64,000 nt of DNA from contig OZ037767.1 in NCBI GenBank assembly GCA_964035545.1, positions 6,960,707 through 7,024,706 on the forward strand, read 5' to 3'. The notes beneath the pieces were generated by a model. That model saw nothing but the letters and a program-made list of their open reading frames with translations, did no database searches and was not told the origin of the DNA. This stretch comes from Bugula neritina (Eukaryota > Animalia > Bryozoa). This document shows, piece after piece, positions 2 through 64,000 of the stretch (its first letter is position 1; each line of letters begins with the position of its first letter). Both the position numbers and the translations under genes were made by a program.

Positions 2-2761
2 GTAGGAGTAACCTGTGACATTGGTAGAATGTTCCATCAGTTTCGGGTTTTTCCTGAACATAGAGATCTCCTCAGGTTTCTTTGGTATGACGAACAGGGA
101 GAGATAGTTCCTTACAGAATGAAAGTGCATCTCTTTGGCGCAACGTCATCCCCCGCATGCACAACATACGGTTTGCGGTCACTCTGTGACACTAGCATCA
201 ACCCAAACACACTTGCTAAATCGTTCATCAGAAACAACTTTTATGTAGATGATGGTTTAATGAGTTTCTCTGATACTGACTCTGCAATTAGTGTGGTCCA
301 AGACGCCATATCCATATGCCAAGAAGGCAATTTACGTCTTCACAAATTCTCATCTAACTCATCTGCTGTTCTCGAATCTATCCCCGCTTCTGAAAGAAAT
401 GTGCAAGACATCCAAACTCTTGAGCCTGATGATGATTCTCAACCCATTGAAAGAACTCTAGGTCTTCTGTGGTCACTCAAATCTGATGCTTTCACATTCA
501 GCTCATCCATCAAGTCAAACCCTAACACTCGTTCAGGTGTTCTCTCTACCATTGCATCCATATTTGATCCTTTAGGCTTCCTCTCCCCATTCATTTTGAA
601 GGGTAAAAATATACTCCAAGATATGTGTAGAATTTCAGCTTCATGGGAGGCAACCCTAGAAGGTGAACTGTTATTACGGTGGGAGAGCTGGAAATCTTCT
701 CTGTCCGATCTCTCCAACATCCACATCAAGAGATGCTACAAACCACATGATTTCGGTGATATCTCCAAAGCAGAAATTCATCATTTCTCCGATGCCAGTA
801 CAGATGGCTATGGTGAAGTCAGCTACTTGAGAGTGGTCAATGCCAAGCACCAAGTCAATGTTTCCTTGCTCATGAGTAAAGGTCGAGTAGCTCCAATCAA
901 ACCCATCACAATCCCCCGCATGGAACTGCAAGCAGCAGTCACCTCAGCACAAGTATCCGGCATTATTAGGTCAGAACTTGGAATGGATGTCACTGAAACA
1001 TTTTGGACTGATTCTCAAGTTGTACTTGGCTATCTCAAAAACACCTCAAAGAAGTTCCATGTATATGTCACAAACAGAATCCAAAAGGTTAGAGACCAGT
1101 CATGTCCAGAAAGTTGGTTTTACGTACCAACAGACCAGAACCCTGCTGACCATGCCTCAAGAGGTCTGACCATTGATCAGCTAAACAAATCCAACTGGTT
1201 CACGGGACCAGATTTTCTCTGGAATGAACCGATAGTAACCCCTGAGCAGCCAACCCCACAAGTTAGAAATGATGACAAAGAGGTCAAGTCACTTGTTACT
1301 TCAACCCATGATACCTCCACCCATCCAACACTTTATCATTTGCTCCATCGCTTTTCCTCCTGGACGACAGCTGTCAAAGTGACAGGACTATTCATTCAGA
1401 AAGCACGCTCTAAGCACATGAAAAGCACTTCTTATGATATAAAATCTGCCTCTGAATCATACATCATCAAATCTGCACAACAGGAGCATCTTCCTGAAGC
1501 TCAATGCCTGAAAGATGGCAAGAAAATCAGTCAAAGCAGCCCTATCTTCAATCTCAGCCCATTCCTTGATTCAAAGGGTATCATGAGAGTTGGAGGTAGA
1601 CTCGATCATAGCGCATTCATTGAGTTCTCAAACAAACACCCAATCATCCTTCCCAAGGCCGGACATTTTACCCAACTTCTTCTTCAGCACTTCCATAACC
1701 AGGCTAAGCATCAAGGTCGTGGAATGACCCTAGCTCAAATGAGATCAGCTGGTTATTGGGTCATAGGTGCTAGACAGCTAGTTACCTCTCTCATCTATCA
1801 TTGTGTGGACTGCCGTCGTGATCGCGGTAAGCCAATCATTCCAAATATGTCTTCACTTCCTGCAGAAAGAGTTACAGAGTCACCCCCTTTCACTTATTGT
1901 GGAGTCGACTGTTTTGGCCCCTTCCAAGTCAAGGATAGACGCACTGAACTGAAACGTTATGGTCTGATGGTCACTTGCTTGGCCAGTCGAGCGGTCCACA
2001 TCGAGCTACTCGATGACATGACTACTTCTTCCTTCATAAATGCCATTCGCAACGTAATTGCTATTCGCGGCCCCATTAGAGAAATCTGGTGTGACCAGGG
2101 TACCAACTTCATTGGCGCTATTCCTGAACTAACTGAGAAAGGTGTCCTGGAGTTTAAGCTAAACCCGCCTGCAGCCAGTCACATGGGTGGCGTCTGGGAA
2201 AGGATGATCCGTTCAGCTAGAAGCATACTTCAACATGTTCTGAGAAAACATGCTGGAAGACTCGACACCAGTAACCTCCGAACCCTCATGTATGAGGTTA
2301 TGGCTATCATAAATTCGAGGCCCCTCTCTACAGTCACTGAAGAGCATCATCCTCTCACTCCAAATCTCCTGCTGACTATGAAGTCAGACATCATTCTTTC
2401 ACCTCCATCTGAATTCACTGACAGTGATATTTACAGCCGCAAGCGCTGGCGTGCGGTGCAGCATCTGGCAAATAACTTCTGGCAGCGTTGGCGCACTGAG
2501 TATTTGTGCTATCTCCAATCTCGCCAGAAATGGGTGAATCAAACAGGCCGAGAAATGAAGACCGGAAACATAGTGATTATTGTGGATGACAATGGTAATA
2601 GAAATGAGTGGTCTATGGGAAAGGTGGTAGAATGTATAAAATCAAAAGACGGTAGAGTCCGATCAGCCAAAATTTTAATTGGTAATAGAAACCAGCCTGT
2701 GAACTCCAAAAAGTACCTACACCGCCCTGTCTCAAAGCTGGTGACACTAATTGAAAACTAA
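2..2761 (+). CDS. pol: BEL/Pao Pol polyprotein, 5'-truncated by window (RT, RNase H/peptidase A17 region, integrase)
   Basis: Frame open from position 2 (VGVTCDIGRMFHQ). RT motifs HLFGATSSP and FYVDD; RNase H HHFSDAS...TIPRMEL...FWTDSQ; integrase HHCC, VDCFGP, CDQGTNF, GGVWERM. Confidence 0.95.
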   Translation, partial: VGVTCDIGRMFHQFRVFPEHRDLLRFLWYDEQGEIVPYRMKVHLFGATSSPACTTYGLRSLCDTSINPNTLAKSFIRNNFYVDDGLMSFSDTDSAISVVQDAISICQEGNLRLHKFSSNSSAVLESIPASERNVQDIQTLEPDDDSQPIERTLGLLWSLKSDAFTFSSSIKSNPNTRSGVLSTIASIFDPLGFLSPFILKGKNILQDMCRISASWEATLEGELLLRWESWKSSLSDLSNIHIKRCYKPHDFGDISKAEIHHFSDASTDGYGEVSYLRVVNAKHQVNVSLLMSKGRVAPIKPITIPRMELQAAVTSAQVSGIIRSELGMDVTETFWTDSQVVLGYLKNTSKKFHVYVTNRIQKVRDQSCPESWFYVPTDQNPADHASRGLTIDQLNKSNWFTGPDFLWNEPIVTPEQPTPQVRNDDKEVKSLVTSTHDTSTHPTLYHLLHRFSSWTTAVKVTGLFIQKARSKHMKSTSYDIKSASESYIIKSAQQEHLPEAQCLKDGKKISQSSPIFNLSPFLDSKGIMRVGGRLDHSAFIEFSNKHPIILPKAGHFTQLLLQHFHNQAKHQGRGMTLAQMRSAGYWVIGARQLVTSLIYHCVDCRRDRGKPIIPNMSSLPAERVTESPPFTYCGVDCFGPFQVKDRRTELKRYGLMVTCLASRAVHIELLDDMTTSSFINAIRNVIAIRGPIREIWCDQGTNFIGAIPELTEKGVLEFKLNPPAASHMGGVWERMIRSARSILQHVLRKHAGRLDTSNLRTLMYEVMAIINSRPLSTVTEEHHPLTPNLLLTMKSDIILSPPSEFTDSDIYSRKRWRAVQHLANNFWQRWRTEYLCYLQSRQKWVNQTGREMKTGNIVIIVDDNGNRNEWSMGKVVECIKSKDGRVRSAKILIGNRNQPVNSKKYLHRPVSKLVTLIEN

Positions 2762-6242: not shown

Positions 6243-6346
6243 AGTAGTAGCAGGTGGATGCGTCCTGGATCACTCTTCTGACACTGGCGAGTCGAAGACT
6301 CGACGGTGGAAGAAGAGTGAGCCAGGACCATCCACCTGCTACTACT
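6243..6346. repeat. terminal imperfect hairpin of Polinton (104 nt)
   Basis: 6243-6260 pairs with 6329-6346, 6262-6268 with 6322-6328 and 6270-6279 with 6311-6320; apical CGAGTC-GAA-GACTCG. Preceded by subterminal direct repeats tataatattacactacttttt (~6185-6237). Confidence 0.9.
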
Positions 6347-10191: not shown

Positions 10192-10287
<96 letters not shown>

Positions 10288-10291
10288 CATG

Positions 10292-10349
<58 letters not shown>

Positions 10350-10354
10350 TATAT
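10192..10354. repeat. (TA)n microsatellite, length-variable among units (also ~25366-25594, ~40734-40958, ~56080-56190)
   Basis: Direct reading; source of spurious YIYI ORFs. Confidence 0.95.
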
Positions 10355-10455: not shown

Positions 10456-13356
10456 TTAGCAATCTCCATAGAAATCCTGCTCCTTTGCTTCTCTAATTGC
10501 TTTGTTCGTGCAGCACAAGAGCTTTTTAAAATTTTCCATCTTGATTGATTCACAAGAAGTCGCGGAGTTTTCACCGTCTCCACATGTACTTTCAAACTGT
10601 TGAAAAATAACTATTGTAATAGTATTGTACAGTATAGGTTAGAGCGTTTGCAGCTAATAACAACAAAATCATAGGCTCAAACCCCAGTAAAAAACGTCGT
10701 GATGTTAGAAAAAGCATCCAGTCATAACTGCTTCGGTGCCACATATGAATAACTGTCCTTAGCCTGCTTTAAAAAGCCTTTCCATGAGGGATTTCTCACA
10801 GGGATGGTGACTATAAACTTGTGTGAGTTTTATTATCATACAATTTCAATATATCAATAATACAACATATCAACATTCCATAATTTGCAAATTATGAGAA
10901 ACAATAACTTAGTAAATAATTGTAGTACTCTAAAATATTCCATATAAGTGTTGTGTCTGTGTAATGGCCCGTGTGGTGTAATGGCTAGTGTGACCCCTTG
11001 CAAGTTGGAGGTTTTGGGTTCGAATCCCAGTGGAGACAAAATTATTTCATAACAGTATAGTTTCAATCTGCACAGTTCGCACAGTTTGGTCAACACCAAT
11101 TCATTGAGAAAATCAGAGTGAGTTCGGTGCAAATTGATATTTGAATAATTCGCCTTCATTTTACAGCTAATGCCAACAGTTATTCTTCTTTACATGACCA
11201 CTGAAAACATCTTTTTATTTTATAATGATTATGAAATGCTGTCAAATTTTTACAGTTTACCAACTTTATGACAGTGATTATTGGAAAACTGGGAGAATCA
11301 CAAAAATCTGACACAATTGTTGAAAAACTTTCATTTCTATATAATTTAGTTTTTATAATAAGAAAGTTACATTTAATAACCAATATTACGGCATAGAGTT
11401 TGCTAACTTGACTATACTGAGTATTGTGTAACCAAAGACTCGACTATATGGAGGTTGACAAGGTTAACTCAAAGCTTCATTCTGTCCTAAACTCTACTAT
11501 TGACAAGAAAACAATATAACTTACATTACTGCATCTGATAGAAGATGTTGCAGTGTCATCCACTACTCTCTTTAATGAACTAATTCGCTGTTTTAGTACA
11601 TTCACTTTGGAACTGAATTGTGAATTACTGCGTAGCATCGAAGCTAGTCTATTAGTTGGACAGTGAAAGAGGCAATAAATATTCTCCAATTGACGACTGT
11701 AGTTGTTAGTGTGACTGCTCATCTAAAGTTAGTAACATAATTTATAACAGCTGCTGTTGCCTGACGAACATCTATTCTCTTACAATTAAGATTACAATAC
11801 AAAAAGTTTGAATTTAATTCGGACCAGGTATTGCTCAAAATTTACAATTCTTATTGTAGTATGATACCCGCATATAGGCTACAGTTTCTTCAGCTTTTGA
11901 CCTCTGATAAAAATAAACAGCCAACAAACATGAGTAATTTAGTTTGCATTATAAAGTCATAAAATGTTTTCAGTTTTAAGCCTATAATTTAGGTCACTAA
12001 AAATATATCGTTTAGACAAAATTAGAGTCACCATTGAAGTGCAGCAGAAAATTTTTTTTCAGGCTTCTGAAATTTCTGCGCTTTACATAACCATGTTATT
12101 TGCAGTAAGGCAATAATGAATGTCATTTACTTACAATTGCAAAATCCAAGCCCCGACAACTGCTGTAATTGCTAACTCCTCTCTGGCTATTAAACCTTCT
12201 ATACTATTAAATAATTACAAAATACTGTGTGAAAATTGATGAAGCTTAGAATCAACATAACTGCAGTTCTATTGAATTTTAAACATTTTTATTTAATGGT
12301 GCAATAGTTTAATTTAGACAAGTAGATATATATACTATTGCATAGATATAATTCATTACAGTTCATTATATATAGAAGCTTCCATTGAAACAGGAATACA
12401 ACATAATTTATAAAACATTTGCTAGCAGTTGTACTTACATATGGCTCTAAAATATCGTCTTGGAGTATAGAAAGAATAAACTCGTCACTAGTTGTGTAAG
12501 AATCAAATATTGCTCTTCTCGTTCCATTATTGAAATTCTCAAAGAATGGTGAAAATGTTGATGATCTTTTATAGCGATTTCTGCTTTTCAAACTGCTTAA
12601 AAATAGAATTATATAAGGTATATACAATATATTTAAAATTACAAACATAATTCTCTTATTTATAGTTGTTTAAGAATTATAAAAAGTAAAATTTGACTCA
12701 AACTATAAAAAAAAATTGAGCTTGAAAACTTACCTGATCAAATTAGATTCCAGTGGCAATCCATCGAGTAACAATAATTGTACACTCATGCAAAAGTATA
12801 CTTTCAAAATATTCTTCGTTCGTGCTAAAACAAAACGGAAAACGTTTTTAAGCTAATGAACACTGTTCATCGTCAGGTTTCAATTCTTGGTGTTTATATT
12901 TTTGCACTAGCGATGTACTTGGTAAGCCACTGCTGTTAGATTTCAGTAAAATTCATTTTTAAGGAACATACTAAAATTTTAAATTAGCAAATTTTTAAAA
13001 ATCTGGTACTGCTACAATATTAGCTCAAAGATTTTTAAGAAATTTTATAGAGAAAGAACATATATAATAATAATTTATATAGTAATTTAGCATGCTCACC
13101 CTTCTAGCTAGAAGCTGTTAAACTATAGCTATGTTAATATAATTATTGTTAAGATCTATAGTAACCATATTATAAAAATTAATTAAATAAATACACTGCA
13201 TATGTTTTAATGTTTTACTAATAATGCTATGATACTATAACATTTTATTGAATTTATTATTCCTACAAGATTGATTAAAATACCATAAATAAACTTGAGC
13301 TTTCAAGAGGTTAGACATATAAGTAAAAGTATATAAAAATTATTATTCTCACCCAT
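10456..13356 (-). CDS. uncharacterised secreted Cys-rich preproprotein, putative helical-cytokine-like, copy 1 (218 aa; exons 13356-13353, 12824-12734, 12592-12439, 12203-12135, 11722-11525, 10596-10456)
   Basis: Six GT-AG exons join into one 657-nt frame: MARTKNILKVYFCMSVQLLLLDG-LPLESNLISLKSRNRYKR-SSTF...LEPY/YRRF...CRGLDFAI/MSSHT...IYCLFHC...IRCSN/FESTC...LLCCTNKAIREAKEQDFYGDC*. Between copies, indels in exons are in-frame (3 nt) and many changes are synonymous. The gene call is better supported than the cytokine label. Confidence 0.8.
10630..10820 (+). mobile_element. degenerate ~200-bp SINE (also at ~25870, ~41243, ~56463)
   Basis: Homologous to 18107-18315 and 21265-21435; shared core gatgttaggaagggcatccag and tail ggggtttctcacagggatggtgactataaa. 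Confidence 0.6.
10966..11038 (+). other. tRNA-like sequence (SINE head or tRNA pseudogene); also 26185-26257, 41560-41631, 56802-56873
   Basis: A box TGGTGTAATGG and B box GGTTCGAATCC at tRNA spacing; acceptor and anticodon stems pair poorly and differ among copies. Confidence 0.65.
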
Positions 13357-17471: not shown

Positions 17472-17999
<528 letters not shown>

Positions 18000-19953: not shown

Positions 19954-20193
19954 TTAAATCTTTTTTCTTGATAATTTATCACCACGGTTACTTGGTAAAC
20001 GGCCTTGACTCTCATTATTATTAGCTTTTTCCTTATCTGTTAGTTTCTTTCTTGGATAAATGTATGCCTTGATGTAGAAATTGGTGAAGAAGAACAACAT
20101 GGAATACGCCCCATATATTGCACTCCAGATGCAGAAACCATGGTATAATATACCAATAGTGCAGTACACCATGTCTATTAGGAACTGTATCAT
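19954..20193 (-). pseudogene. orphan terminal exon of an ELOVL fatty-acid elongase
   Basis: Acceptor ttttttgttgtag, then MIQF...LFFFTNFYIKAY, typical of the ELO-family C-terminus, with a basic ER-retrieval-like tail (RKKI*). No upstream ELO exons (HxxHH) found in the unit. Confidence 0.75.
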
Positions 20194-21898: not shown

Positions 21899-23665
21899 AT
21901 GGACATTTGCATGTTTATTGTTTTCATGGCGTTTACAACCTTGTTTCGAGTGAGGGTTACACTGGGATCAGGTATGTCAACCACAAACATGTACTGTTTT
22001 TGCTATTGTTAAATTTATATGTAGATTTTATGTATCAATGTATTACTTCAATGGTGTTAAAGAATGTTGGATAACCTGAATGTAAGTTCCATGAGCTTTT
22101 ATTTCTACGCACTTTGATTACATCATGATTTTATTAACCAGGTTTAGTGATTGTCTTGTTAGATATTATTGTATCCCAAGCACTAATATATAATATATGA
22201 TCTATACTACTGTATTATATTTAAAGGAAAGAGTTGTCTCCAGCCCAAAGATGAAGGAGTCTATCGACCTCATAGTATACAGCTACGCTACTACTATGAT
22301 GCAATCGGCAGCAAGCAATGCCACTCCTTCATTTTTTACGGGTCAGGAGAAAACAGCAACAACTTCATGTGAGTGTGTTCTTTTATTTCTGTCTCTATAC
22401 TATTCGTAATTGTTTGTAAAAATCAGGATTTTTGAAAATGTAATACCAAATCATATATCATACTTCATGAAAAAATTAAAAATATATTTAAAATTTCAAA
22501 AAGATTATGTGAAGTGGAATTAAAGCATTTAAGTTTTATATATTCCACAAGCTGTATAGGAAGTACTTAACCAAGTTACACATTGGAAATAGTTGTTAAG
22601 ATTTGGAGTTATTGTCTCTAATCATAAAGATCTATTGAGTGTTCATAAGATTCAAAGTTCACAGAGCAGTTAGGACTGAAATAGTTTGTATCTTGCTTAT
22701 GTTCATTTACACAAAAAACTTATAGAATTTCAGTCCTCCAAAATTCATGGTTATTTTATGCTTTGATATGCAGGTAGAATCACAATGGTTGCAATGCGTT
22801 ACATTAATGTCATGCTTTTTCTAAGTAAAGTGATATTTCATTACAATAGCTTTGAACGAGTCTGTGACAATGAGTGTAGTTACTCTACAGCCTTGTGCGT
22901 TCTCCCTAAAGAGGAGGGAAATGAGAGTGGCCACCATCTCAGGTTCTTCTACAATCCTTCCACCAGAGCCTGTGAAAGCTTTTATTATAAAGGCTCCAAT
23001 GGCAATGCAATCAAGTTTCAGTAAGAAAATTTTTGACTCCAAATTCCTGCTTTTAGTTTGAATAAGTCTTATTAAATGACTATACTTTGAATGAAAATCA
23101 TTCAAAGTAACTGTTTGGAGATTCAAGTATCATGCATTTGGCATACAACTCCAAACTGTTGATCTGCAAGCCTTCTAAATCGTACATTATTTTCTTCTAG
23201 GAGAAAGTCGGACTGCATCTCTCGGTGCAGGAGTAATTTAAGACAGGTTTGTCACAGCGGAGAACTGAACCTTGATTACTGTTTAACCCACCATCAACCC
23301 TGGTATTATAACAGTACGTCAGGTAGATGTGAAGTTCTCCATCAAGGTCGTTGCAATCGGGATGATAATCGATTCGAGTGAGTTTGCAACACTTTAGTAG
23401 TTTATGGACCATTAGAAGCAGCTTAACTAATTGTGACTTATTTTTATTCTAATGTTTATTTAAAATTGTAATTTTCATCTATATATTTTATATAAAAAGT
23501 TTTTTTTTCTAGTATAATGCAAAATGCACACACATGCTTTGGTTACATTGATATGTTGAGCATGCCTGAGTTATATTCTTATTCTAAACTGTTTATGTTT
23601 CTGTTTATAAATGTAGAACTGAAGATGAGTGTGAATTGACCTGCAACTATCCTACAGATGATTAA
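21899..23665 (+). CDS. triple Kunitz protein, copy 2 (exons 21899-21971, 22227-22368, 22850-23020, 23201-23377, 23617-23665)
   Basis: Same exon lengths and splice sites, open frame; substitutions include G>E in K1 (GSGEN) and N>I in K2 (NAIKF). Confidence 0.88.
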
Positions 23666-25362: not shown

Positions 25363-25510
<148 letters not shown>

Positions 25511-25511
25511 G

Positions 25512-25597
<86 letters not shown>

Positions 25598-25695: not shown

Positions 25696-27541
25696 TTAGC
25701 AATCCCCATAGAAATCCTGCTCCTTTGCTTCTCTAATTGCTTTGTTCGTGCAGCACAAGAGCTTTTTGAAATTTTCCATCTTGATTGATTCACAAGAAGT
25801 CGCGGAGTTTTCACCGTCTCCACATGTACTTTCAAACTGTTGAAAAATAACTATTGTAATAGTATTGTACAGTATAGGTTAGAGCGTTTGCAGCTAATAA
25901 CAACAAAATCATAGGCTCAAACCCCAGTAAAAAACGTCGTGATGTTAGAAAAAGCATCCAGTCATAACTGCTTCGGTGCCACATATGAATAACTGTCCTT
26001 AGCCTGCTTTAAAAAGCCTTTCCATGAGGGATTTCTCACAGAGATGGTGACTATAAACTTGTGTGAGTTTTATTATCATACAATTTCAATATATCAATAA
26101 TACAACCGATCAACAATAATAATAATTTAGTAAATAATTGTAGTACTCTGAAATATCCCAAATATAGTGTTGTGTTTGTGTAATGGCCCGTGTGGTGTAA
26201 TGGCTAGTGCGACTCCTTGCAAGTTGGAGGTTTCGGGTTCGAATCCCAGTGGGGACAAAATTATTTCATAACAGTATAGTTTCAATCTGCACAGTTCACA
26301 CAGTTTAGTCAACACCAATTCATTGAGAAAATCAGAGTGAGTTCGGTGCAAATTGATATTTGAATAATTCGCCTTCATTTTACAGCTAATGCCAACAGTT
26401 ATTCTTCTTTACATGACCACTGAAAACATCTTTTTATTTTATAATGATTTTGAAATGCTGTCAAATTTTTACAGTTTACCAACTTTATGACAGTGATTAT
26501 TGGAAAACTGGGAGAATCACAAAAATCTGACACAATTGTTGAAAAACTTTCATTTCTATATAATTTAGTTTTTATAATAAGAAAGTTACATTTAATAACC
26601 AATATTACGGCATAGAGTTTGCTAACTTGACTATACTGAGTATTGTGTAACCAAAGACTCGACTATATGGAGGTTGACAAGGTTAACTCAAAGCTTCATT
26701 CTGTTCTAAACTCTACTATTGACAAGAAAACAATATAACTTACATTACTGCATCTGATAGAAGATGTTGCAGTGCCATCCACTACTCTCTTTAATGAACT
26801 AATTCGCTGTTTTAGTACATTCACTTTGGAACTGAATTGTGAATTACAGCTTAACATCGAAGCTAGTCTATTAGTTGGACAGTGAAAGAGGCAATAAATA
26901 TTCTCCAATTGACGACTGTAGTTGTCAGTGTGACTGCTCATCTAAAGTTAGTAACATAATTTATAACAGCTGCTGTTGCCTGACGAACATCTATTCCCTT
27001 ACAATTAAGATAACAATACAAAAAGTTTGAATTTAATTCGGACCAGGTATTGCTCAAAATTTCCAATTCTCATTGTAGTATGATACCTCGCATATACAGT
27101 TTCTTCAGCTTTTGACCTCTGATAAAAATAAACAGCCAAAAAACATGAGTAATTTAGTTTGCATTATAAAGTCATAAAATGTTTTCAGTTTTAAGCCTAT
27201 AATTTAGGTCACTAAAAATATATCGTTTAGACAAAATTAGAGTCACCATTGAAGTGCATCAGAATTTTTTTTTTTTTCAGGCTTCTAAAATTTCTGTGCT
27301 TTACATAACCATGTTACTTGCAGTAAGGTAATAATGAATGCTATTTACTTACAATTGCAAAATCCAAGCCTCGACAACTGCTGTAATTGCTAACTCCCCT
27401 CTGGCTATTAAACCTTCTATACTATTAAATAATTACAAAATACTATGTGAAAACGGATAAAGCTTAAAAGTAACATAGCAGCAGTTCTATTGAATTTTAA
27501 ACATTTTTATTTACTGGTGCAATAATTTAATTTAGACAAGT

Positions 27542-27579
<38 letters not shown>

Positions 27580-28659
27580 ACTTGTCTAAATTAAATTATT
27601 GCACCAGTAAATATATATATATATACTATTGCATAGATATAATTCATTACAGTTCATTATATATAGAAGCTTCCATTGAAACAGGAACACAACATAATTT
27701 ATAAAAAATTTGCTAGCAGTTGTACTTACATATGGCTCTAAAATATCGTCTTGGAGTATAGAAAGAATAAACTCGTCACTAGTTGTGAAAGAATCAAATA
27801 TTGCTCTTCTTGTACCATTATTGAAATTCTCAAAGAATGGTGAAAATGTTGATCTTTTATAGCGATTTCTGCTTTTCAAACTGCTTAAAAATAGAATTAT
27901 ATAAGGTATATACAATATATTTAAAATTAAAAACATAATTCTTTTATTTATAGTTGTTTAAGAATTATAAAAAGTAAAATTTGACTCAAACTATAAAAAA
28001 AATTTGAATTTGAAAACTTACCTGATCAAATTAGATTCCAATGGCAATCCATTGAGTAACGATAATTGTACACTCATGCAAAAGTATACTCTCAAAATAT
28101 TCTTCGTTCGTGCTAAAACACAATGGAAAACGTTTTCAAGCTAATGAACACTGTTCATAGTCAAGTTTCAATTCTTGGTGTTTATATTTTTGCACTAGCA
28201 ATGTACTTGGTAATAAGCCACTGCTGTTAGATTTCAGTAAAATTCATTTTTAAGGAACATATTAAATCTTTAAATTAGCAAATTTTTAAAAATCTGGTAC
28301 TGCTACAATATTAGCTCAAAGATTTTTAAGATTTTAAGAAATTTTATAGAGAAAGAATATATATAATAATAATGTATATAATAATTTAGCATGTTCACCC
28401 TTCTAGCTAAAAGCAGTCAAACTAATGTATAGCTATGTTAATATAACTATTGTTAATATTTATTGTAACCATATTATAAAAATTAGTAAATAAATACACT
28501 GCATATGTTTTAATGTTCTACTAATAATGCTATGATACTATAACATTTTATTGAATTTATTATTGCTACAAGATTGATTAAAATACCATAAATAAACTTG
28601 AGCTTTCAAGAGGTTAGACATATTAGTAAAAGTATATAAAAATTATTATTCTCACCCAT
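25696..28659 (-). CDS. secreted preproprotein, copy 2 (exons 28659-28656, 28112-28022, 27880-27730, 27421-27353, 26941-26744, 25836-25696)
   Basis: Splice sites retained; 3-nt deletion after RYKR; an extra Cys in exon 5 (MLSCNS). Confidence 0.78.
27508..27613. repeat. perfect 106-bp palindrome centred on (TA)n, unique to unit 2
   Basis: tatttactggtgcaataatttaatttagacaagtag(at)n followed by its reverse complement. Confidence 0.9.
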
Positions 28660-41071: not shown

Positions 41072-43999
41072 TTAGCAATCTCCATAGAAATCCTGCTCCT
41101 TGGCTTCTCTAATTGCTTTGTTCGTGCAGCACAAGAGCTTTTTAAAATTTTCCATCTTGATTGATTCACAAGAAGCCGCGGAGTTTTCACCGTCTCCACA
41201 TGTACTTTCATACTGTTGAAAAATAACTACTGTAATAGTATTGCACAGTATAGGTTAGAGCATTTGCAGCTAATAACAACAAAATCATAGGCTCAAACAC
41301 CAGTAAAAAACATCGTGATGTTAGGAAAAGCATCCAGTCATAACTGCTTCAGTGCCACATATGAATCACTGTTGTTAGCCTGCTTTAAAAAGCCTTTCCA
41401 TGAGGGGTTTCTCACAGGGATGGTGACTATAAACTTGTGTGAGTTTTATTATTGTACAATTTCAATATATCAATAATACAACAGATCAACAATAAAAATA
41501 ATTCAGTCAATAATTGTAGTACTCTAAAATATTCCAAATAAGTGTTGTGTTTGTGTAGTGGCCGTGTGGTGTAATGGCTAGTGCGACTCCTTGCAAGTTT
41601 GAAGTTTTGGGTTCGAATCCTACTGGTGACAAAATTATTTCATAACAGTATAGTTTCAATCTGCACAGTTCACACAGTTTAGTCAACACCAATTCATTGA
41701 GAAAATCAGAGTGAGTTCGGTGCAAATTGATATTTGAATAATATGCCTTCATTTTACAGCTAATGCCAACAGTTATTCTTCTTTACATGACCACTGAAAA
41801 CATCTTTTTATTTTATAATTATTTTGAAATGCTGTCAAATTTTTACAGTTTACCAACTTTATGACAGTGATTATTGGAAAACTGGGAGAATCACAAAAAT
41901 CTGACACAATTGTTCAAAAACTTTCATTTCTATATAATTTAGTTTTTATAATAAGAAAGTTACATTTAATTACCAATATTACGGCATAGAGTTTGCTAAC
42001 TTGACTATACTGAGTATTGTGTAACCAAAGACTCGACTATATGGAGGTTGACAAGGTTAACTTAAAGCTTCATTCTGTCCTAAACTCTACTATTGACAAG
42101 TAAACAGTATAACTTACATTACTGCATCTGATAGAAGATGTTGCAGTGCCATCCACTACTGTCTTTAATGAACTAATTCGCTGTTTTAGTACATTCACTT
42201 TGGAACTAAATTGTGAATTACTGCGTAACATCGAAGCTAGTCTATTAGTTGGACAGTGAAAGAGGCAATAAATATTCTCCAATTGACGACTGTAGTTGTC
42301 AGTGTGACTGCTCATCTAAAGTTAGTAACATAATTTATAACAGCTGCTGTTGCCTGACGAACATCTATTCTCTTACAATTAAGATTACAATACAAAAAGT
42401 TTGAATTTAATTCGGACCAGGTATTGCTCAAAATTTCCAATTCTTATTGTAGTATGATACCCGCATATAGGCTACAGTTTCTTCAGCTTTTGACCTCTGA
42501 TAAAAATAAACAGCCAACAAACACGAGTAATTTAGTTTGCATTATAAAGTCATAAAATGTTTTCAGTTTTAAGCCTATAATTTAGGTCACTAAAAATATA
42601 TCGTTTAGACAAAATTAGAGTCACCATTGAAGTGCATCAGAAAAATCTTTTTTGAGGCTTCTGAAATTTCTGCGCTTTACATAACCATGTTACTTGCAGT
42701 AAGGTAATAATGAATGTCATTTACTTACAATTGCAAAATCCAAGCCCCGACAACTGCTGTAATTGCTAACTCCTCTCTGGCTATTAAACCTTCTATACTA
42801 TTAAATAATTACAAAATACTGTGTGAAAACTGATAAAGCTTAAAAGTAACATAACAGAAGTTTTGTTAAATTTTAAACATTTCTATTTACTGGTGCAATA
42901 ATTTAATTTAGACAAGTAGATATATATACTATTGCATAAATATAACCTAATACAGTTCATTATATGTAGAAGCTTTCATTGAAACAGGAATACAATATAA
43001 TTTATAGAACATTTGCTGATAGTTGTACTTACATATGGCTCTAAAATATCATCTTGAAGTACAGAAAGAATAAACTCATCACTAGTTGTGTAAGAATCAA
43101 ATATTGCCCTTCTTGTTCCATTATTGAAATTTTCAAAGAATGGTGGAAATGTTGATGATCTTTCATAGCGATTTCTGCTTTTCAAACTGCTTAAAAATAG
43201 AAATGTATATCAGGTATATACAATATAAAAATAGAATTATATAAAGTATATACAATATATTTAAAATTAAAAACATAATTCTTTTATTTATAGTTGTTTA
43301 AGAATTATAAAAAGTAAGATTTGACTGAAACTATAAAAAAAATTTGAATTTGAAAACTTACCTGATCAAATTAGATTCCAATGGCAATCCATTGAGTAAC
43401 GATAATTGTACACTCATGCAAAAGTATACTCTCAAAATATTCTTCGTTCGTGCTAAAACACAATGGAAAACGTTTTCAAGCTAATGAACACTGTTCATAG
43501 TCAAGTTTCAATTCTTGGTGTTTATATTTTTGCACTAGCAATGTACTTGGTAATAAGCCACTGCTGTTAGATTTCAGTAAAATTCATTTTTAAGGAACAT
43601 ATTAAATCTTTAAATTAGCAAATTTTTAAAAATCTGGTACTGCTACAATATTAGCTCAAAGATTTTTAAGATTTTAAGAAATTTTATAGAGAAAGAATAT
43701 ATATAATAATAATGTATATAATAATTTAGCATGTTCACCCTTCTAGCTAAAAGCAGTCAAACTAATGTATAGCTATGTTAATATAACTATTGTTAATATT
43801 TATTGTAACCATATTATAAAAATTAGTAAATAAATACACTGCATATGTTTTAATGTTCTACTAATAATGCTATGATACTATAACATTTTATTGAATTTAT
43901 TATTGCTACAAGATTGATTAAAATACCATAAATAAACTTGAGCTTTCAAGAGGTTAGACATATTAGTAAAAGTATATAAAAATTATTATTCTCACCCAT
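41072..43999 (-). CDS. secreted preproprotein, copy 3 (exons 43999-43996, 43452-43362, 43186-43033, 42797-42729, 42315-42118, 41212-41072)
   Basis: Open frame; processing site changed from RYKR to RYER. Confidence 0.78.
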
Positions 44000-56193: not shown

Positions 56194-57505
56194 TCTATTA
56201 ACTTCTCTTGATAAACAGGGTAGAAACCAGTTAACTAAATAAATATGACAATCATATATAAAAGAAAAATCATATGTTACATGTTATTATTAGCAATCTC
56301 CATAGAAATCCTGCTCTTTTGCTTCTCTAATTGCTTTGTTCGTGCAGCACAAGAGCTTTTTGAAATTTTCCATCTTGATTGATTCACAAGAAGTTGCGGA
56401 GTTTTCACCGCCTCCACATGTACTTTCAATATACTGTTGAAAAATAACTATTGTAATAGTATTGTACAATATAGGGTAGAGCGTTTGCAGTTAGTAACAA
56501 CAAAGTCATAGGCTGGAACCCCAGTAAAAACATCGTGATGTTAGGAAAAGCATCCAGTCATAACTGCTTCGGTGCCACATATGAATAACTGTCCTTAGCC
56601 TGCTTTGAAAAGCCTTTCCATCAGGGGTTTCTTATAAGAATGGTGACTATAAACTTGCGTGAGTTTTATTATCATACAAGTTTTTTATATCAATAGTACA
56701 GCAGATCAACATTTCATAATTTGCAAACTATGAGAAACAATAATTTAGTCAATAATTGTAGTACTCTAAAATATTCCAAATAAGTGTTGTGTCTGTGTAG
56801 TGGCCGTGAGGTGTGATGGCTAGTGCGACTCCTTGCAAGTTAGAGGTTTCATGTTCGAATCCCAGTGGGGACAAAATTATTTCATAACAGTATAGTTTCA
56901 ATCTGCACAGTTTACACAGCTTTTTAGTCAACACCAATTTATCAAGAAAATCAGAGTAAATTTGGAACAATTTGATACTTGAATAATTCATCTTCATTTT
57001 ACAAGTAATGCCAACAGCTGTTATTCTTTACATGACCACTGAAAACTTTTTATGTTTAATAATGATTTTAAAATGCTGTCAAACTTTTACAGTTAACCAA
57101 CTTTATGGCTGCGATCAATGGGAGACTGGGGGAATCATAAGAACTGACACAAGCTGAAAAAATTTATTTTATATTATACTTTAAGTTTTTTTAATGAGAA
57201 AGTTATATTTCATAACTAATATTATGGCATAGAGTTTGCTAACTTGACTCGCAAAATCTGCTGCTATACTGAATGTTGTGTAACCAAAGACTATATGGAA
57301 GTTGACCAGTGTTAGTCAATATATATTATATATAAATGTTTCTGAAAAAAATAATTGTTTTATTTTACTATATATATATATCTAGGCTCATAAATAGTTT
57401 GCATTACCTGTTCTTGATAGACAGGGTAGAAACCGAGATCAAACAAAGCTTCACATTCAGCCAGTTAACTAATTGACAAGTAAACAATATAACTTACATT
57501 ATTGC

Positions 57506-57702
57506 TGTTGTAATATTTACACAGTTTATGTAAACTTGGAGTTACCTTTTCTTGATGTTTTAGCTGATCAATTATTATTCTGTTTTTGTAAAAGATAGTC
57601 ACTTCCTGTTTGGCAAACTGCAGTGCTTGATTAAAATAAACTGAAGATTAAAACTAATCCACTAATAATTGCTAGATAAATAGACATCTAAAGAATAAAA
57701 CA
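57506..57702 (+). repeat. 5' LTR of Gypsy element
   Basis: Direct repeat of 61453-61649. Confidence 0.95.
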
Positions 57703-57713
57703 TGGTGGCAGCG
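57703..57713 (+). other. primer binding site, tRNA-Leu type
   Basis: TGGTGGCAGCG directly after the 5' LTR is complementary to the 3' end (...CGCTGCCA-CCA) of eukaryotic tRNA-Leu(AAG/TAG). Confidence 0.8.
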
Positions 57714-57736
57714 TAATTTAATGGTTAGTTTAAAAG

Positions 57737-60700
57737 ATGGAAGGCATTTCACCACCTGGACAATTGAATTTAAGGGCAGAAGATTTGTCAGGAGAATGGC
57801 GGCGTTGGATTAGGTCATTTGAGGATTATTTGCTAGCAATAGACCTAACTGCTAACTCAAGAGCCGCAGAAAAAAGGAAATTAGCCTTATTCAGACATTG
57901 TGGTGGTGAAGATGTACGTGAAATTTATTCTCAAATGGAATTTAATCTAGAGGTTAGTGGAGAAATTACTGAAATTGAGGAAGGGGTTGCTGGGAGAAAG
58001 CTAGAAGATGTAATTAGGCGTTTTCATGAGTACTGTAATCCTCGCACTAGTATTGTGCTGAATAGATTTCAATTTCACAACAGTAGCCAAAGTGGAGATA
58101 CAATAGATGTATACTTAATGAAATTGCGAAGGCTGGCGGAAGGCTGTGAATTTGGCAATCAAAGAGATTCATTGATAAGAGATAAACTGCTTTTTGGAAT
58201 TGATGATTTTAATGAAAGAGAAAAATTAATGAAAGAGGTTGATGAAAAACTAAGTTTAGACTTTGTGATTAAGTCACTGAGAGTAGCTGAGAAATCTACA
58301 AGGCCTAAAGCGATAACGCTACCAGACCCCAAACCCGAAGAAGTCAATGCAGTACAAAATGTTGATAATAGGAAGTCAAGAATTCCTTCTGAGGTTACTT
58401 ATGATAAACGTTCCAAGAACCGATGTGAGCATTGTGGGAAAAACCATTACAAAAGTCAGAGATGTCCAGCTTATGGAACTAAATGTGCGAAATGCAATCA
58501 ATTCAACCACTGGGCCAGAGTGTGTAGGAATTTGAATAAAGTCAATGAAGTACAGCCAGAAAAGGGTGACACAGATTTTTATTTAGGAGAGACACATCAC
58601 ATTAACTCCATAGGTTCTCAATCCTGGTACACCAATCTCAGAGTAAGCACCAACAAACACAAAGGACAAAGGATCAAATTTAAATTAGATACTGGTGCGT
58701 CTCTTAGTGTATGTGGTCCACATCATGTCTCAGGGGAGCTAATCTCAACTAGCAAAAAATTGTACGGCCCAGGGCAGACACTTTTGACATGTTTAGGAAC
58801 AATAAAGTGCCAGATAACATCAAAGAATGAGCGCATAAATGAAGACCTTTATGTTATTCAAGATCAAACCACACCATTGCTTAGCCGTAGTGCATGTGAG
58901 AAATTAAACCTCATCTCTGTGGATTCATCTCAATGCCAAATAGAGAATGTGTGTGTTGATGAGAAGCTGTTCCAAGGATTGGGCAAAGTAAATACAGAGC
59001 ATGTCATTACGTTGAAAGGAGATGCTAAACCATTTGCTATCCATGTTCCCAGACCCATACCTTTTCCTAGAAGAAAGTTAGCAGATGAAGCATTGATGAA
59101 AATGATTGAGGATGGAGTAATTGTTAAAGTTGATGAACCTACTCCATGGGTGGCACCTATGGTAGTAGTTCCTAAACCTGGCCAAAACAAGGTGAGAATT
59201 TGCACAGATTATACCGAGTTAAACAAGCATATTTTGAGAGAGTTCCATCCCATGGCAACAGTAGATAGCAGCTTAGCTCAATTAGGACAAGGACAAATTT
59301 TTTCCAAGATTGATGCAAACAGTGGTTTTTGGCAAATTCCTTTAAGCGAAGAATCTAGCAAACTAACAACGTTTCTGACTCATTCTGGACGATATCGCTA
59401 TTTGCGACTGCCTCAAGGCCTATGCAGTGCTCCAGAAATTTTTGTTGCTGAAATGAACAATATTTTGAAGGATGTTGATGGTGTGGTTATACATATGGAT
59501 GACATACTGGTTTTTGGTGAGAGCAAGGAGCAACATGACACAAGATTGCAAATAGTGTTGGAAAAACTTAAAGCTTCAGGCATTACGCTCAATAAAGACA
59601 AATGTAAATTTGGAGTACCATCTGTTAATTTTCTTGGTTATGTCATAGATCAGTCTGGTATACATGTTGGCCCTCGAGTTCAAGGAATAGTAGATTTTCC
59701 TACTCCGAAAAATGTAACTTCAGTACGAAGTTTTCTTGGAATGGCCAACCAGTATGCTAAGTTTTCCGAGGAATTAGCTGCTGTGAGTGAACCAATTAGA
59801 ATGCTGTTGAAGAAAGATGTTCCATGGCACTGGTCCAGCAAACAAGAAAACTCCTTCACGAGGATAAAAGAAATATTTCAAAATGCACCAGTTTTAGCAG
59901 TCTATGATGTAGACAAAGACACCATAATCACAACAGATGCTAGCAATGCAGGTCTAGGAGCAACACTCTGTCAAATTCAACAGGATGGCTCTCGGCGCTT
60001 GATATCTGCTGCAAGTCGATCTTTAACAGAGACCGAAAAGCGTTATGCAGCCATAGAAAAAGAAAGTTTAGCAGTCTGTTGGGCTATGGAAAAGTTTTCT
60101 CCATATATACTAGGTATGAAGAATGTGGTTATTGAAACTGATCACCGTCCACTAGTTACTTTGTTTGGGAATATCTTTCTAGACAGGCTTCCACCAAGAA
60201 TTCAAGGGTTTAAACTTAGACTTCAAAGATTTCAGTATACTATCAGACATGTGAGGGGGTCTAAGAATGTTGCAGCTGATGCTCTCTCCAGGTATAACAC
60301 TGCTGAAGCGAACGAGATTGATGCAGCAAGAGAAATGGAAATTGAACTTTATATTGATAACATCTACCAACATGGATCTGATAGCAGGTTGGAGCAGCTT
60401 CGATTAGAACAACATGAAGATGAAATACTGTCAAAAGTAATCAAATTAGTAGAAAATGGATGGCCAGGGTATTTGTCCACTGAAGATGTCCTTCTGAAGC
60501 CCTATTTTGAAAGAAGATCTCTTTTAACAATAAACAAAGGATTCTTGACACTTGGCAATCGTTTGGTAATACCGTTAGCTCAAAGAGAACAGGTGTTGCA
60601 AGATATACATAGAGGACACTTGGGCATTACAAAATGTCAAGCACGGGCTAGAGATGGCGTGTGGTGGCCTTCTATGTCAAAGGCTATTGAGGCTATGATC

Positions 60701-61021
60701 AGCAATTGTGCTGAATGCAAAATCCATGCAGCTAAAATTACAGAGCCATTACGTCCTTCTGCAACTCCAGATAGACCTTGGCAACACCTTAGCACCGATT
60801 TGTTGACTTATAAAGGCCAAGTATATCTTCTGGTTATTGATAATTATTCAAGGTATCCTGAACTTGCCTTGCTGGGAAACTCTGACTTTTCTTCAAGTAA
60901 AGTAATAACACACCTAAAATCTATTTTTTCACGACATGGCATACCTGAAATACTATTGTCAGATAACGGCCCACAATATGCAAGTGCAGAATTTAAACAT
61001 TTTTCTGTCGAGTATGGATAA
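57737..61021 (+). CDS. Gypsy gag-pol polyprotein, integrase truncated by internal deletion
   Basis: Gag zinc knuckles CEHCGKNH..C and CAKCNQFNHWARVC; protease LDTGAS; RT HMDD; RNase H TTDAS/YAAIEKE/ETDHRPL; integrase HHCC, STDL, SDNGPQY, then a stop. The integrase tail continues in another frame at ~61021-61343. Confidence 0.92.
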   Translation: MEGISPPGQLNLRAEDLSGEWRRWIRSFEDYLLAIDLTANSRAAEKRKLALFRHCGGEDVREIYSQMEFNLEVSGEITEIEEGVAGRKLEDVIRRFHEYCNPRTSIVLNRFQFHNSSQSGDTIDVYLMKLRRLAEGCEFGNQRDSLIRDKLLFGIDDFNEREKLMKEVDEKLSLDFVIKSLRVAEKSTRPKAITLPDPKPEEVNAVQNVDNRKSRIPSEVTYDKRSKNRCEHCGKNHYKSQRCPAYGTKCAKCNQFNHWARVCRNLNKVNEVQPEKGDTDFYLGETHHINSIGSQSWYTNLRVSTNKHKGQRIKFKLDTGASLSVCGPHHVSGELISTSKKLYGPGQTLLTCLGTIKCQITSKNERINEDLYVIQDQTTPLLSRSACEKLNLISVDSSQCQIENVCVDEKLFQGLGKVNTEHVITLKGDAKPFAIHVPRPIPFPRRKLADEALMKMIEDGVIVKVDEPTPWVAPMVVVPKPGQNKVRICTDYTELNKHILREFHPMATVDSSLAQLGQGQIFSKIDANSGFWQIPLSEESSKLTTFLTHSGRYRYLRLPQGLCSAPEIFVAEMNNILKDVDGVVIHMDDILVFGESKEQHDTRLQIVLEKLKASGITLNKDKCKFGVPSVNFLGYVIDQSGIHVGPRVQGIVDFPTPKNVTSVRSFLGMANQYAKFSEELAAVSEPIRMLLKKDVPWHWSSKQENSFTRIKEIFQNAPVLAVYDVDKDTIITTDASNAGLGATLCQIQQDGSRRLISAASRSLTETEKRYAAIEKESLAVCWAMEKFSPYILGMKNVVIETDHRPLVTLFGNIFLDRLPPRIQGFKLRLQRFQYTIRHVRGSKNVAADALSRYNTAEANEIDAAREMEIELYIDNIYQHGSDSRLEQLRLEQHEDEILSKVIKLVENGWPGYLSTEDVLLKPYFERRSLLTINKGFLTLGNRLVIPLAQREQVLQDIHRGHLGITKCQARARDGVWWPSMSKAIEAMISNCAECKIHAAKITEPLRPSATPDRPWQHLSTDLLTYKGQVYLLVIDNYSRYPELALLGNSDFSSSKVITHLKSIFSRHGIPEILLSDNGPQYASAEFKHFSVEYG

Positions 61022-61452
61022 GCTTAAACCTGAACTCCCTGACCATGACTTATTCAAAAGGAGCAACGATCAGTATAAAGAGAAAATGAAAGAAAATCAT
61101 GACAAAAATCCTAAAGTGCGCCCCCTTTTGCCAGTAAATAAAGGAGACAATGTGATGGTGAGAGATATGCAAAGAGAAGGCTATGCTGCCTCTTCTTCAG
61201 ACAATATTACTCGTCGAACAAATGTCATGACTGACACTGGACCTTTAATACGTAACAGAGCTGATATAACTAATATCCCAACACGATGTTCTGAGCGAAC
61301 CAGAAAAGTGCCACGCTACTTAACAGATTTTGATTGTACATAATTTATTATCCACGCCTGTAGTATAAGTTGCACTTGATTTAATTACTGTTGTCAAACC
61401 GTTTCTTTTGTGTGTTTTTTTTTGTTGTTGTAGCCTGAAACTAAAGAGGGGA

Positions 61453-61649
61453 TGTTGTAATATTTACACAGTTTATGTAAACTTGGAGTTACCTTTTCTT
61501 GATGTTTTAGCTGATCAATTATTATTCTGTTTTTGTAAAAGATAGTCACTTCCTGTTTGGCAAACTGCAGTGCTTGATTAAAATAAACTGAAGATTAAAA
61601 CTAATCCACTAATAATTGCTAGATAAATAGACATCTAAAGAATAAAACA
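61453..61649 (+). repeat. 3' LTR of Gypsy element
   Basis: Follows the PPT; direct repeat of 57506-57702. Confidence 0.95.
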
Positions 61650-64000
61650 ATTGCATCGGATAGAAGATGTTGCAGTGCCATCCACTACTGTCTTTAATGA
61701 ACTAATTCGCTGTTTTAGTACATTCACTTTGGAACTAAATTGTGAATCACTGCGCAACATCGAAGCTAGTCTATTAGTTGGACAGTGAAAGAGGCAATAA
61801 ATATTCTCCAATTGATGACTGTAGTTTCCAGTGTGACTGCTCATCTAAAGTTAGTAACATAATTTATAACAGCTGCTGTTGCCTGATGAACATCTATTCC
61901 CTTACAATTAAGATTACAATACAAAAAGTTTGAATTTAATTCGGACCAGGTATTGCTCAAAATTTACAATTCTTATCATATAGTATGATACCCCTCATAT
62001 ACAGTTTCTTCAGCTTTTGACCTCTGATCAAAATACACAGCCAACAAACATGAGTAATTTAGTTTGCATTATGAAGTCATAAAATTTTTTCAGTTTTAAG
62101 CCTATAATTTAGGTCGCTAAAAATATATCGTTTAGACAAAATTAGAGTCACCATTGAAGTGTATCAGAAATTTTTTTTTTTTGAGGTTTCTGAAATTTCT
62201 GTGCTTTACATAACCATGTTACTTGCAGTAAGGTAATAATGAATGTCATTTACTTACAATTGCAAAATCCAAGCCCCGACAACTGCTGTAATTGCTAACT
62301 CCTCTCTGGCTATTAAACCTTCTATACTATTAAATAATTACAAAATACTGTGTGAAAACTGATAAAGCTTAAAAGTAACATAACAGCAGTTCTATTAAAT
62401 TTTAAACATTTTTATTTATTGGTGCAATAATTTAATTTAGACAAGTAGATATATATACTATTGCATAAATACAACCTAATACAGTTCATTATATGTAGAA
62501 GCTTTCATTGAAACAGGAATACAATATAATTTATAGGACATTTGCTGGCAGTTGTACTTACATATGGCTCTAAAATATCGTCTTGAAGTACAGAAAAAAT
62601 AAACTCGTCACTAGTTGTGTAAGAATCAAATATTGCCCTTCTTGTTCCATTATTGAAATTCTCAAAGAATGGTGAAAATGTTGATGATCTTTTATAGCGA
62701 TTTCTGCTCTTCAAACTGCTTAAAAGTAGAAATATATAAGGTATATACAATATATTTAGAATTAGAAACATAATTTTCTTATTTATAGTTGTTTAAGAAT
62801 TATAAAAAAAATTGAACTTGAAAACTTACTTGATCAAATTAGATTCCAGTGGCAATCCATCGAGTAACAATAATTGTACACTCACGCAAAAATATACTCT
62901 CAATATATTCTTCGTTTGTGCTAAAACACAATAAAAAACGTTTTCAAGCTAGTGAATATTATTCATCGTCAAGTTTCAATTCTTGGTGTTTATATTTTTG
63001 CACTAGCAATGTACTTGGTAAGCCACTGCTGTTAGATTTCAGTAAAATTCATTTTTAAGAAACATACTAAAATTCTAAATAAGCAAATTTTTAAAAATCT
63101 GGTACTGCTACAATATTGACTCAAAGATTTTTAAGATTTTAAGAAATTTTATAGAGAAAGAAAATATATAATAATAATTCATATAATAATTTAGCATGCT
63201 CACCCTTCTTTTAGCTAGAGGTAGTCAAACTAATGCATAGCTATGTTAATATAATTTTTGTTAATATTTATTGTAACCATATTATAAAAATTAATTGAAT
63301 AAATACGCTGCATATGTTTTAATGTTCTACTAATAACGCTATGATACTATAACATTTTATTAAATTTATTATTGCTACAATGTTGAATAAAATACCATAA
63401 ATAAACTTGAGATTTCAAGAGGTTAGACATATAAGTATAAAAAAACAAATTAGTATTCTCACCCATCTTGTTATAAGCAGTCGAAACTAGTTGATATATT
63501 TATTATTAATATATGATTCCTAAACTTTCTTATTTAGTAACTAAACTATATTGACACAACAGCTGTTTTAATGTTTACCAATAGTCCAGCAAGTATAAAC
63601 AAATGAATTGTGAGTTGGGTTTATATACTCTTTCAATACCTACTCAAATGTACTCATAGCTGACTTATTTATGCAATCAGCATTTTTTGCAAAAATCTAA
63701 TTGACTGTGTTTAAAAATATAAATAACTTACTCAAGACAAAATTCATACGCACATGCAAGTTTCTAGTCTGTAAAAAAGATTGCTAAACTAATATAATGT
63801 TATTAATTAAACAGCTATATTACAACAGGCAAAAAAATTGGTATGCATGTCTAAAATTAGACATCAAGTTTGCATAGTTATTTTATATTTAGAGTTTGAA
63901 TCTTCATTTATAGTTTACAAATGTTTAAAATTAATAGTAATTGCAAAATATCTTATTATAAATTAAATAATAGAAATGGAAACATTGCCAAAGTTGAAAA

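Follow-up and report, generated by a model that had tools for sequence, protein, structure and literature searches.

The question raised by this locus is whether a spliced reading frame, divided among six short exons on the minus strand, represents a real gene of the bryozoan Bugula neritina, and what kind of protein it would encode. The stretch analysed, called the window below, is 64,000 nucleotides (nt) of the chromosome-scale contig OZ037767.1 (assembly GCA_964035545.1, positions 6,960,707 to 7,024,706 of the forward strand). Its G+C content is about 29%, and all coordinates given here are positions within it. An initial annotation had read the frame, which occurs here in four copies, as a gene for a secreted four-helix-bundle cytokine or hormone. 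From the analysis described here, we favor a real, bryozoan-restricted protein-coding gene with four tandem paralogues, of which three are intact and one was broken recently; it would encode a secretory precursor of 219 amino acids (aa). We give this reading a probability of roughly 0.6.

Exon structure and coding status of the four copies

The six-exon spliced model with a 4-nt ATGG first coding exon, as proposed initially, was found on the minus strand (Table 1). The coding length of copy 1 is 660 nt, corresponding to 219 codons and a stop. The introns of all copies are bounded by GT and AG throughout, their phases are 1, 2, 0, 0 and 0 as had been annotated, and all ten splice sites are retained in all four copies, of which the ATGs are located at 13356, 28659, 43999 and 63466. 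The start ATG of the gene has A at position -3 and G at position +4. When every upstream ATG staying open to a phase-1 GT within 1.8 kb was taken as a candidate start exon, ATGG/GTGAGA had the sole good donor among the 24 phase-1 ATG..GT candidates upstream of exon 2. M14, the first in-frame ATG of exon 2, was rejected as a start, because it leaves no signal peptide and the codon is GTG in copy 4. The predicted TATA box (TATATAAA) is kept in all copies, and this box and the 5' untranslated region (5'UTR) are nearly identical across them. No upstream ATG was present in the 144 nt of the presumed 5'UTR (13500-13357), up to just downstream of the TATATAAA box. The short element that had been noticed after the stop, ATTTATTTA, is located about 31 nt past the stop codon and is likewise present in all copies. 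No canonical AATAAA was found in the roughly 600 nt that follow the stop.

The four copies are not independent gene duplicates. Each is contained in one unit of a tandem array with a period of about 15.3 kb, and a self-comparison gave a unit-to-unit identity of 90-97%, for coding and non-coding DNA alike. In a six-frame search of the 216,009,554-bp assembly, exons 3, 5 and 6 were found at exactly four loci, all inside the window. The idea that the 15.3-kb unit is a mobile element was rejected, since the exons are found nowhere else in the genome. The copies differ by small changes, including the deletion of one Ser codon directly after the RYKR motif and an additional Cys (S139C) in copy 2, and 3 extra nt at the start of exon 6 in copy 4. 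The claim that only in-frame insertions or deletions (indels) distinguish the copies did not hold, because a long terminal repeat (LTR) retroelement of 4,144 bp interrupts exon 5 of copy 4, so that this copy is broken as assembled. The element carries two 197-bp LTRs and is flanked by a 5-bp target duplication (GCAAT); its 1094-aa pol-type open reading frame (ORF) has reverse transcriptase, RNase H and integrase domains. Its LTRs are 100% identical, and the break of copy 4 is accordingly very recent.

Because the copies share their introns, exons and introns could be compared directly. Variable sites made up 7.0% of the exon positions and 12.0% of the intron positions (Fisher p=2e-4). The introns contained 28 indel events, 6 of which were multiples of three, while the exons contained, besides the retroelement, 2 indels, both of 3 nt, where about 8 were expected from the intron density. 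Codon changes were counted against the majority codon, and the expectation for the exons was derived from the substitution spectrum of the introns. On this basis, 45 exon changes were seen against 76 predicted (omega of about 0.4). Of these, 22 were synonymous and 23 non-synonymous, none created a stop, and the expected synonymous share was only 26% (binomial p=7.7e-4). The pairwise ratio of non-synonymous to synonymous rates (dN/dS) among the copies was 0.18-0.26. The proposed frame was free of stops in all four copies, with a synonymous fraction of 0.50, whereas the five other frames, read in the same columns, had 38-90 stops and synonymous fractions of 0.19-0.40. Exon 4 and the last 30 residues showed no amino-acid change among the four copies. 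The real coding status that had been claimed is borne out by this excess of synonymous changes and by a single frame that is open in all copies. A selected protein-coding gene is much the best reading of these evolutionary signatures and, as judged from the aligned copies, it is well supported.

The predicted precursor and the search for relatives

The N-terminus, as read from the sequence, consists of an n-region (MARTKNILK) followed by an h-region (VYFCMSVQLLLL). A propeptide of about 15-20 residues would follow, and the convertase motif RYKR ends at codon 42. The chain after RYKR is 177 aa long and contains 9 Cys in copy 1, in which the predicted signal peptide, propeptide and mature chain agree with the initial description. 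This description does not extend to every copy; copies 1, 2 and 4 have RYKR, but copy 3 has RYER (which still fits R-x-x-R), and copy 2 has a tenth Cys. The precursor thus appears to combine a signal peptide with an R-x-x-R-type basic motif, a feature of convertase-processed precursors, and a secreted pro-protein is a plausible reading. The composition of exons 3-6 is 15.5% Ser, 8.6% Asn and 8.6% Arg, with 7% Leu, 3.7% Ala and 2.7% Val, which is polar for a packed helical bundle.

From these features, a possible course of maturation can be outlined. The precursor would enter the secretory pathway via its N-terminal signal peptide, and a furin/proprotein convertase-type enzyme would clip it after R42. 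A mature protein of about 177 aa, N-glycosylatable, Ser/Asn-rich, largely helical and stabilised by disulfides, would then be released. Its odd number of Cys suggests that two chains may be joined covalently through a disulfide. The role of the protein would be extracellular, that of a hormone-like ligand or some other soluble effector.

Secondary structure was predicted by AlphaFold2 from isolated exons as single sequences, which shows helices and not the topology of the chain. Exon 3 alone gave helices at residues 16-33 and 37-45 with a predicted local distance difference test score (pLDDT) of 62.3, and exon 5 alone gave helices at 5-20, 26-31 and 34-60 with a pLDDT of 68.9. The segments proposed as A, B and C are thus predicted to be helical with low confidence, A being covered by the two helices of exon 3, and B and C by those at 5-20 and 34-60 of exon 5. 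The helical hydrophobic moment was compared with 2000 shuffles. Among the four segments that had been called amphipathic, only D (exon 6) rose above the shuffled controls (p=0.004), while A (exon 3, p=0.10) and B/C (exon 5, p=0.15) did not.

Homology searches were run exon by exon. For exon 5, a HMMER search of 1.84 billion representative proteins found no relative, and returned only the repeat-protein artefacts P0001 and P0002, which are summed weak partial matches. Exons 3-6 against Pfam at E<=1 gave nothing at threshold, with sub-threshold noise from Med9, SGS and SCRG1, and exons 3, 5 and 6 against PDB sequences at E<=10 gave no relative and no cytokine. In the ESM Atlas, exon 5 had no match, and neither exon 5 nor exon 6 led to a cytokine cluster. 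Matches of exon 6 to 'Vps4_C fragments' in the ESM Atlas had a score of 0.94 but 160 shared features and no Pfam support; the number of shared features is too small, and they were taken as look-alikes among short C-terminal helices. A JGI metagenome scan detected no relative, and both Rfam on the whole window and a tRNA search of the gene region were empty. Cys patterns of insulin-like, saposin-like or PLA2-like type were rejected, because visual comparison showed mismatched spacing. As far as these searches reach, the gene family is an orphan.

Weighing of the alternatives

Several points weigh against a functional secreted-protein gene. The variable sites are distributed over the three codon positions as 14/12/20, which is not significantly uneven, purifying selection is no more than moderate, and copy 4 has already been disrupted. 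The sole sequencing run examined is DNA: its contigs cover introns and exons alike and have no intron-skipping joint, which identifies the run as genomic. No predicted protein of any species, including B. neritina itself, matches exon 5 among the 1.84 billion representatives. The 4-nt coding first exon is a model, and trans-splicing of exon 2 would make M14 the first ATG and remove the signal peptide. The predicted signal peptide and cleavage site were judged by eye, and the confidence of the predicted helices is low (pLDDT 62-69, single sequence, isolated exons).

With regard to function, the protein could be a secreted effector and not a ligand, for example an antimicrobial/defence protein or a matrix/adhesion protein of a colonial, surface-fouled animal, encoded in a fast-evolving tandem array. 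The young paralogues (3-9% diverged), the restriction to one lineage with no homologue found, and the Kunitz-type protease-inhibitor exons that are also present in each unit are consistent with this idea. So is the predicted layout, a secreted chain containing Cys behind a short propeptide with KR at its end, which is found in the precursors of many invertebrate toxins and antimicrobials. However, an omega of about 0.25-0.45 points to constraint, whereas arrays of this kind are commonly under diversifying selection. Moreover, the whole 15-kb unit is duplicated, and its amplification need not be driven by the orphan gene. The chain lacks the repeats or low complexity typical of matrix/adhesive proteins, and 177 aa is long for an antimicrobial peptide. 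An effector of this kind is possible but, in our view, unlikely.

It is somewhat less probable again that the locus is not a functional gene. In that case the open frames would have arisen by chance, or a decaying and unexpressed relic would have been carried along when the 15-kb unit was duplicated. The sole run examined gave no RNA evidence, the protein collection has no matching prediction, copy 4 is broken, and the duplication takes in all of the non-coding DNA; in addition, the variable sites show no significant preference for any codon position and the start codon depends on a modelled exon of 4 nt. On the other hand, 219 codons are open in four copies in one of six frames only, and there are more synonymous changes than expected (p=8e-4). 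The exons have too few substitutions and indels, both exon indels are of 3 nt, all ten splice sites have been kept in all copies, and the identical LTRs show that the break of copy 4 is very recent.

The last alternative is the cytokine itself, in which the mature chain would be an up-up-down-down four-helix-bundle class I cytokine or hormone acting through a Domeless/gp130-type receptor and JAK/STAT signalling. In this case the gene would be the first lophotrochozoan helical JAK/STAT cytokine, diverged beyond sequence detection and with an added convertase propeptide. Helices are predicted at the proposed positions of A, B and C, and D is strongly amphipathic. The spacing, with a long A-B connection (exon 4 and the start of exon 5), a short B-C connection and a long Cys-rich C-D connection, suits the cytokine topology. 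The chain ends in Cys, as leptin does. An exon-wise six-frame search of the genome found a STAT (42 bits) and a JAK-type FERM_F2 domain (35 bits), with two loci for STAT_bind and one for FERM_F2. According to PMC13203501, IL-6-type ligands are not known outside vertebrates, although receptor-like genes extend to molluscs.

The structure of the gene, which had been taken as cytokine-like, is real as far as the phase-0 introns in the mature region and the tiny phase-1 first coding exon are concerned, but it is not family-specific. Many secreted-protein genes share these features, and the intron phases and helix spacing are common to many unrelated secreted helical proteins. No exon matched a cytokine family profile (IL6, Hormone_1, Leptin, IL2, IL4, GM_CSF, EPO_TPO, CNTF, LIF_OSM and others) in exon-by-exon searches, even at E<=1, no PDB sequence was matched, and the ESM Atlas gave no cytokine lead. 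Segments A-C are not significantly more amphipathic than shuffled sequence. The chain has 7% Leu and 15.5% Ser, while helical cytokines are Leu-rich, and a convertase-cleaved propeptide and nine Cys are unusual in class I cytokines. Jak1_Phl and the receptor domain IL6Ra-bind gave no match in the exon-wise genome search, which is a weak one and does not imply absence. Since the prior for an orphan helical protein being a JAK/STAT ligand is also low, we consider the cytokine very improbable.

Neighbouring features and comparison with known systems

Table 1. Features of the gene copies, the tandem array and the surrounding DNA
Feature	Position	Strand	Description
Copy 1 exon 1 (coding part)	13356-13353	-	4 nt, ATGG; donor GTGAGA; Kozak-like context acaagATGG
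Copy 1 exon 2	12824-12734	-	91 nt; remainder of signal-peptide-like N-terminus (MARTKNILKVYFCMSVQLLLLDG...) and propeptide start; next intron phase 2
Copy 1 exon 3	12595-12439	-	157 nt; propeptide end with RYKR, NGT glycosylation motif, proposed helix A
Copy 1 exon 4	12203-12135	-	69 nt, 23 aa, YRRFNSQRGVSNYSSCRGLDFAI; proposed AB loop
Copy 1 exon 5	11722-11525	-	198 nt, 66 aa; proposed helices B and C
Copy 1 exon 6	10596-10456	-	141 nt including TAA stop; Cys-rich loop, amphipathic helix D, C-terminal Cys
TATATAAA box	13514-13507	-	about 150 nt upstream of copy 1 ATG; identical in 4/4 copies
Tandem array	6346-64000		units of about 15.3 kb starting near 6346, 21587, 36947 and 52305; one gene copy each
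Copy 2, intact	25696-28659	-	exons 28659-28656, 28112-28022, 27883-27730, 27421-27353, 26941-26744, 25836-25696
Copy 3, intact	41072-43999	-	exons 43999-43996, 43452-43362, 43189-43033, 42797-42729, 42315-42118, 41212-41072
Copy 4, disrupted	56290-63466	-	exons 63466-63463, 62920-62830, 62718-62562, 62326-62258, 61844-61650 + 57505-57498 (split exon 5), 56433-56290
LTR retroelement	57506-61649	+	4,144 bp; in exon 5 of copy 4, 6 nt before donor
Kunitz/BPTI-like exons (three)	22187-23378	+	repeated per 15.3-kb unit
ORF with weak elongase match	19957-20193	-	ELO/GNS1 fatty-acid elongase C-terminal
Highly repeated element	about 10608-11127		intron 5 of copy 1
(GT)263 microsatellite	17473-17998		perfect; adjoins (AT)25
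(TA)n tracts	10192-10354, 25366-25594		long; after 3' end of each gene copy
BEL/Pao pol ORF	29-2761	+	910 aa; just before first array unit

Other features of the window were also recorded. Each unit contains three Kunitz/BPTI-like exons on the strand opposite to the orphan gene. The ORF at 22785-23024, the only one scored, matched PF00014 with E=3.8e-10. Some canonical Cys are missing from two of the three exons (22187-22369 and 22767-23021). The exons suggest that a gene with several Kunitz domains, intact or in relic form, was duplicated together with the orphan gene. An open frame on the minus strand had a weak match to the C-terminal part of ELO/GNS1 fatty-acid elongases (E=0.006, below the cut-off) and could be the terminal exon of a further gene in the unit. 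A very highly repeated element lies in intron 5 of copy 1, with a word depth in the DNA run of up to 330,000 compared with about 200 nearby; the contigs of this run show it at about 10608-10919. From its high repetition and an adjoining tRNA-like stretch near 10975-11040, it is probably a tRNA-derived short interspersed nuclear element, although ARAGORN called no tRNA at 10975-11040. The microsatellite, which occurs inside each unit, accounts for the GC-skew spike at 16-18 kb. The 910-aa ORF preceding the array has Pao-type retropepsin, integrase zinc-binding and DUF5641 domains, which identify it as the pol of a BEL/Pao retroelement.

Like the class I helical cytokines and hormones (IL-6/G-CSF, GH/prolactin, leptin, IL-2/IL-4/GM-CSF), the Bugula chain is predicted to be secreted and is similar in size (about 177 aa). 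It also shares with them predicted helical segments, long-short-long connections, a C-terminal Cys, and phase-0 introns in the mature region after a very short phase-1 first coding exon. Unlike them, it showed no sequence or profile similarity to the family, has a predicted convertase-type propeptide and nine Cys, and is rich in Ser/Asn and poor in Leu; amphipathicity could be demonstrated for only one of its four segments. Among invertebrates, the known JAK/STAT ligands are Upd1-3 of Drosophila (Unpaired), which diverge too fast for sequence search. The Bugula protein resembles them in being predicted to be secreted, glycosylatable and helical, in an animal that has JAK and STAT. In contrast, no similarity to Upd was detected, and the Upd proteins are about twice as long as the Bugula chain, basic and matrix-associated; to our knowledge, they are known only in arthropods. 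We know of no JAK/STAT pathway ligand in lophotrochozoans. A four-helix cytokine would therefore matter much more, if true, JAK and STAT being present in the genome; as it stands, the orphan gene is ordinary but clean, and its interpretation as a cytokine is a low-probability guess.

The convertase-processed precursors of invertebrates, such as those of prohormones, toxins and antimicrobial peptides, share with the Bugula precursor the predicted signal peptide, a short propeptide ending in KR or R-x-x-R, a Cys-containing mature chain and tandem genes. The Bugula mature chain differs from them in being much longer, a single product, and without an amidation signal or a known Cys framework. The gene also resembles taxonomically restricted ('orphan') families in segmental tandem duplications, with no homologue found in 1.84 billion representatives, moderate purifying selection, and only four copies, all in one 60-kb array. 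Nothing distinguishes it from this broad class, a label that describes such genes without making them a functional family. The gene thus represents an uncharacterised family of predicted secreted proteins, in one lineage of a phylum whose molecular biology has hardly been studied. It can help to annotate the B. neritina genome, and offers a clean example of a selected orphan gene in a young segmental array.

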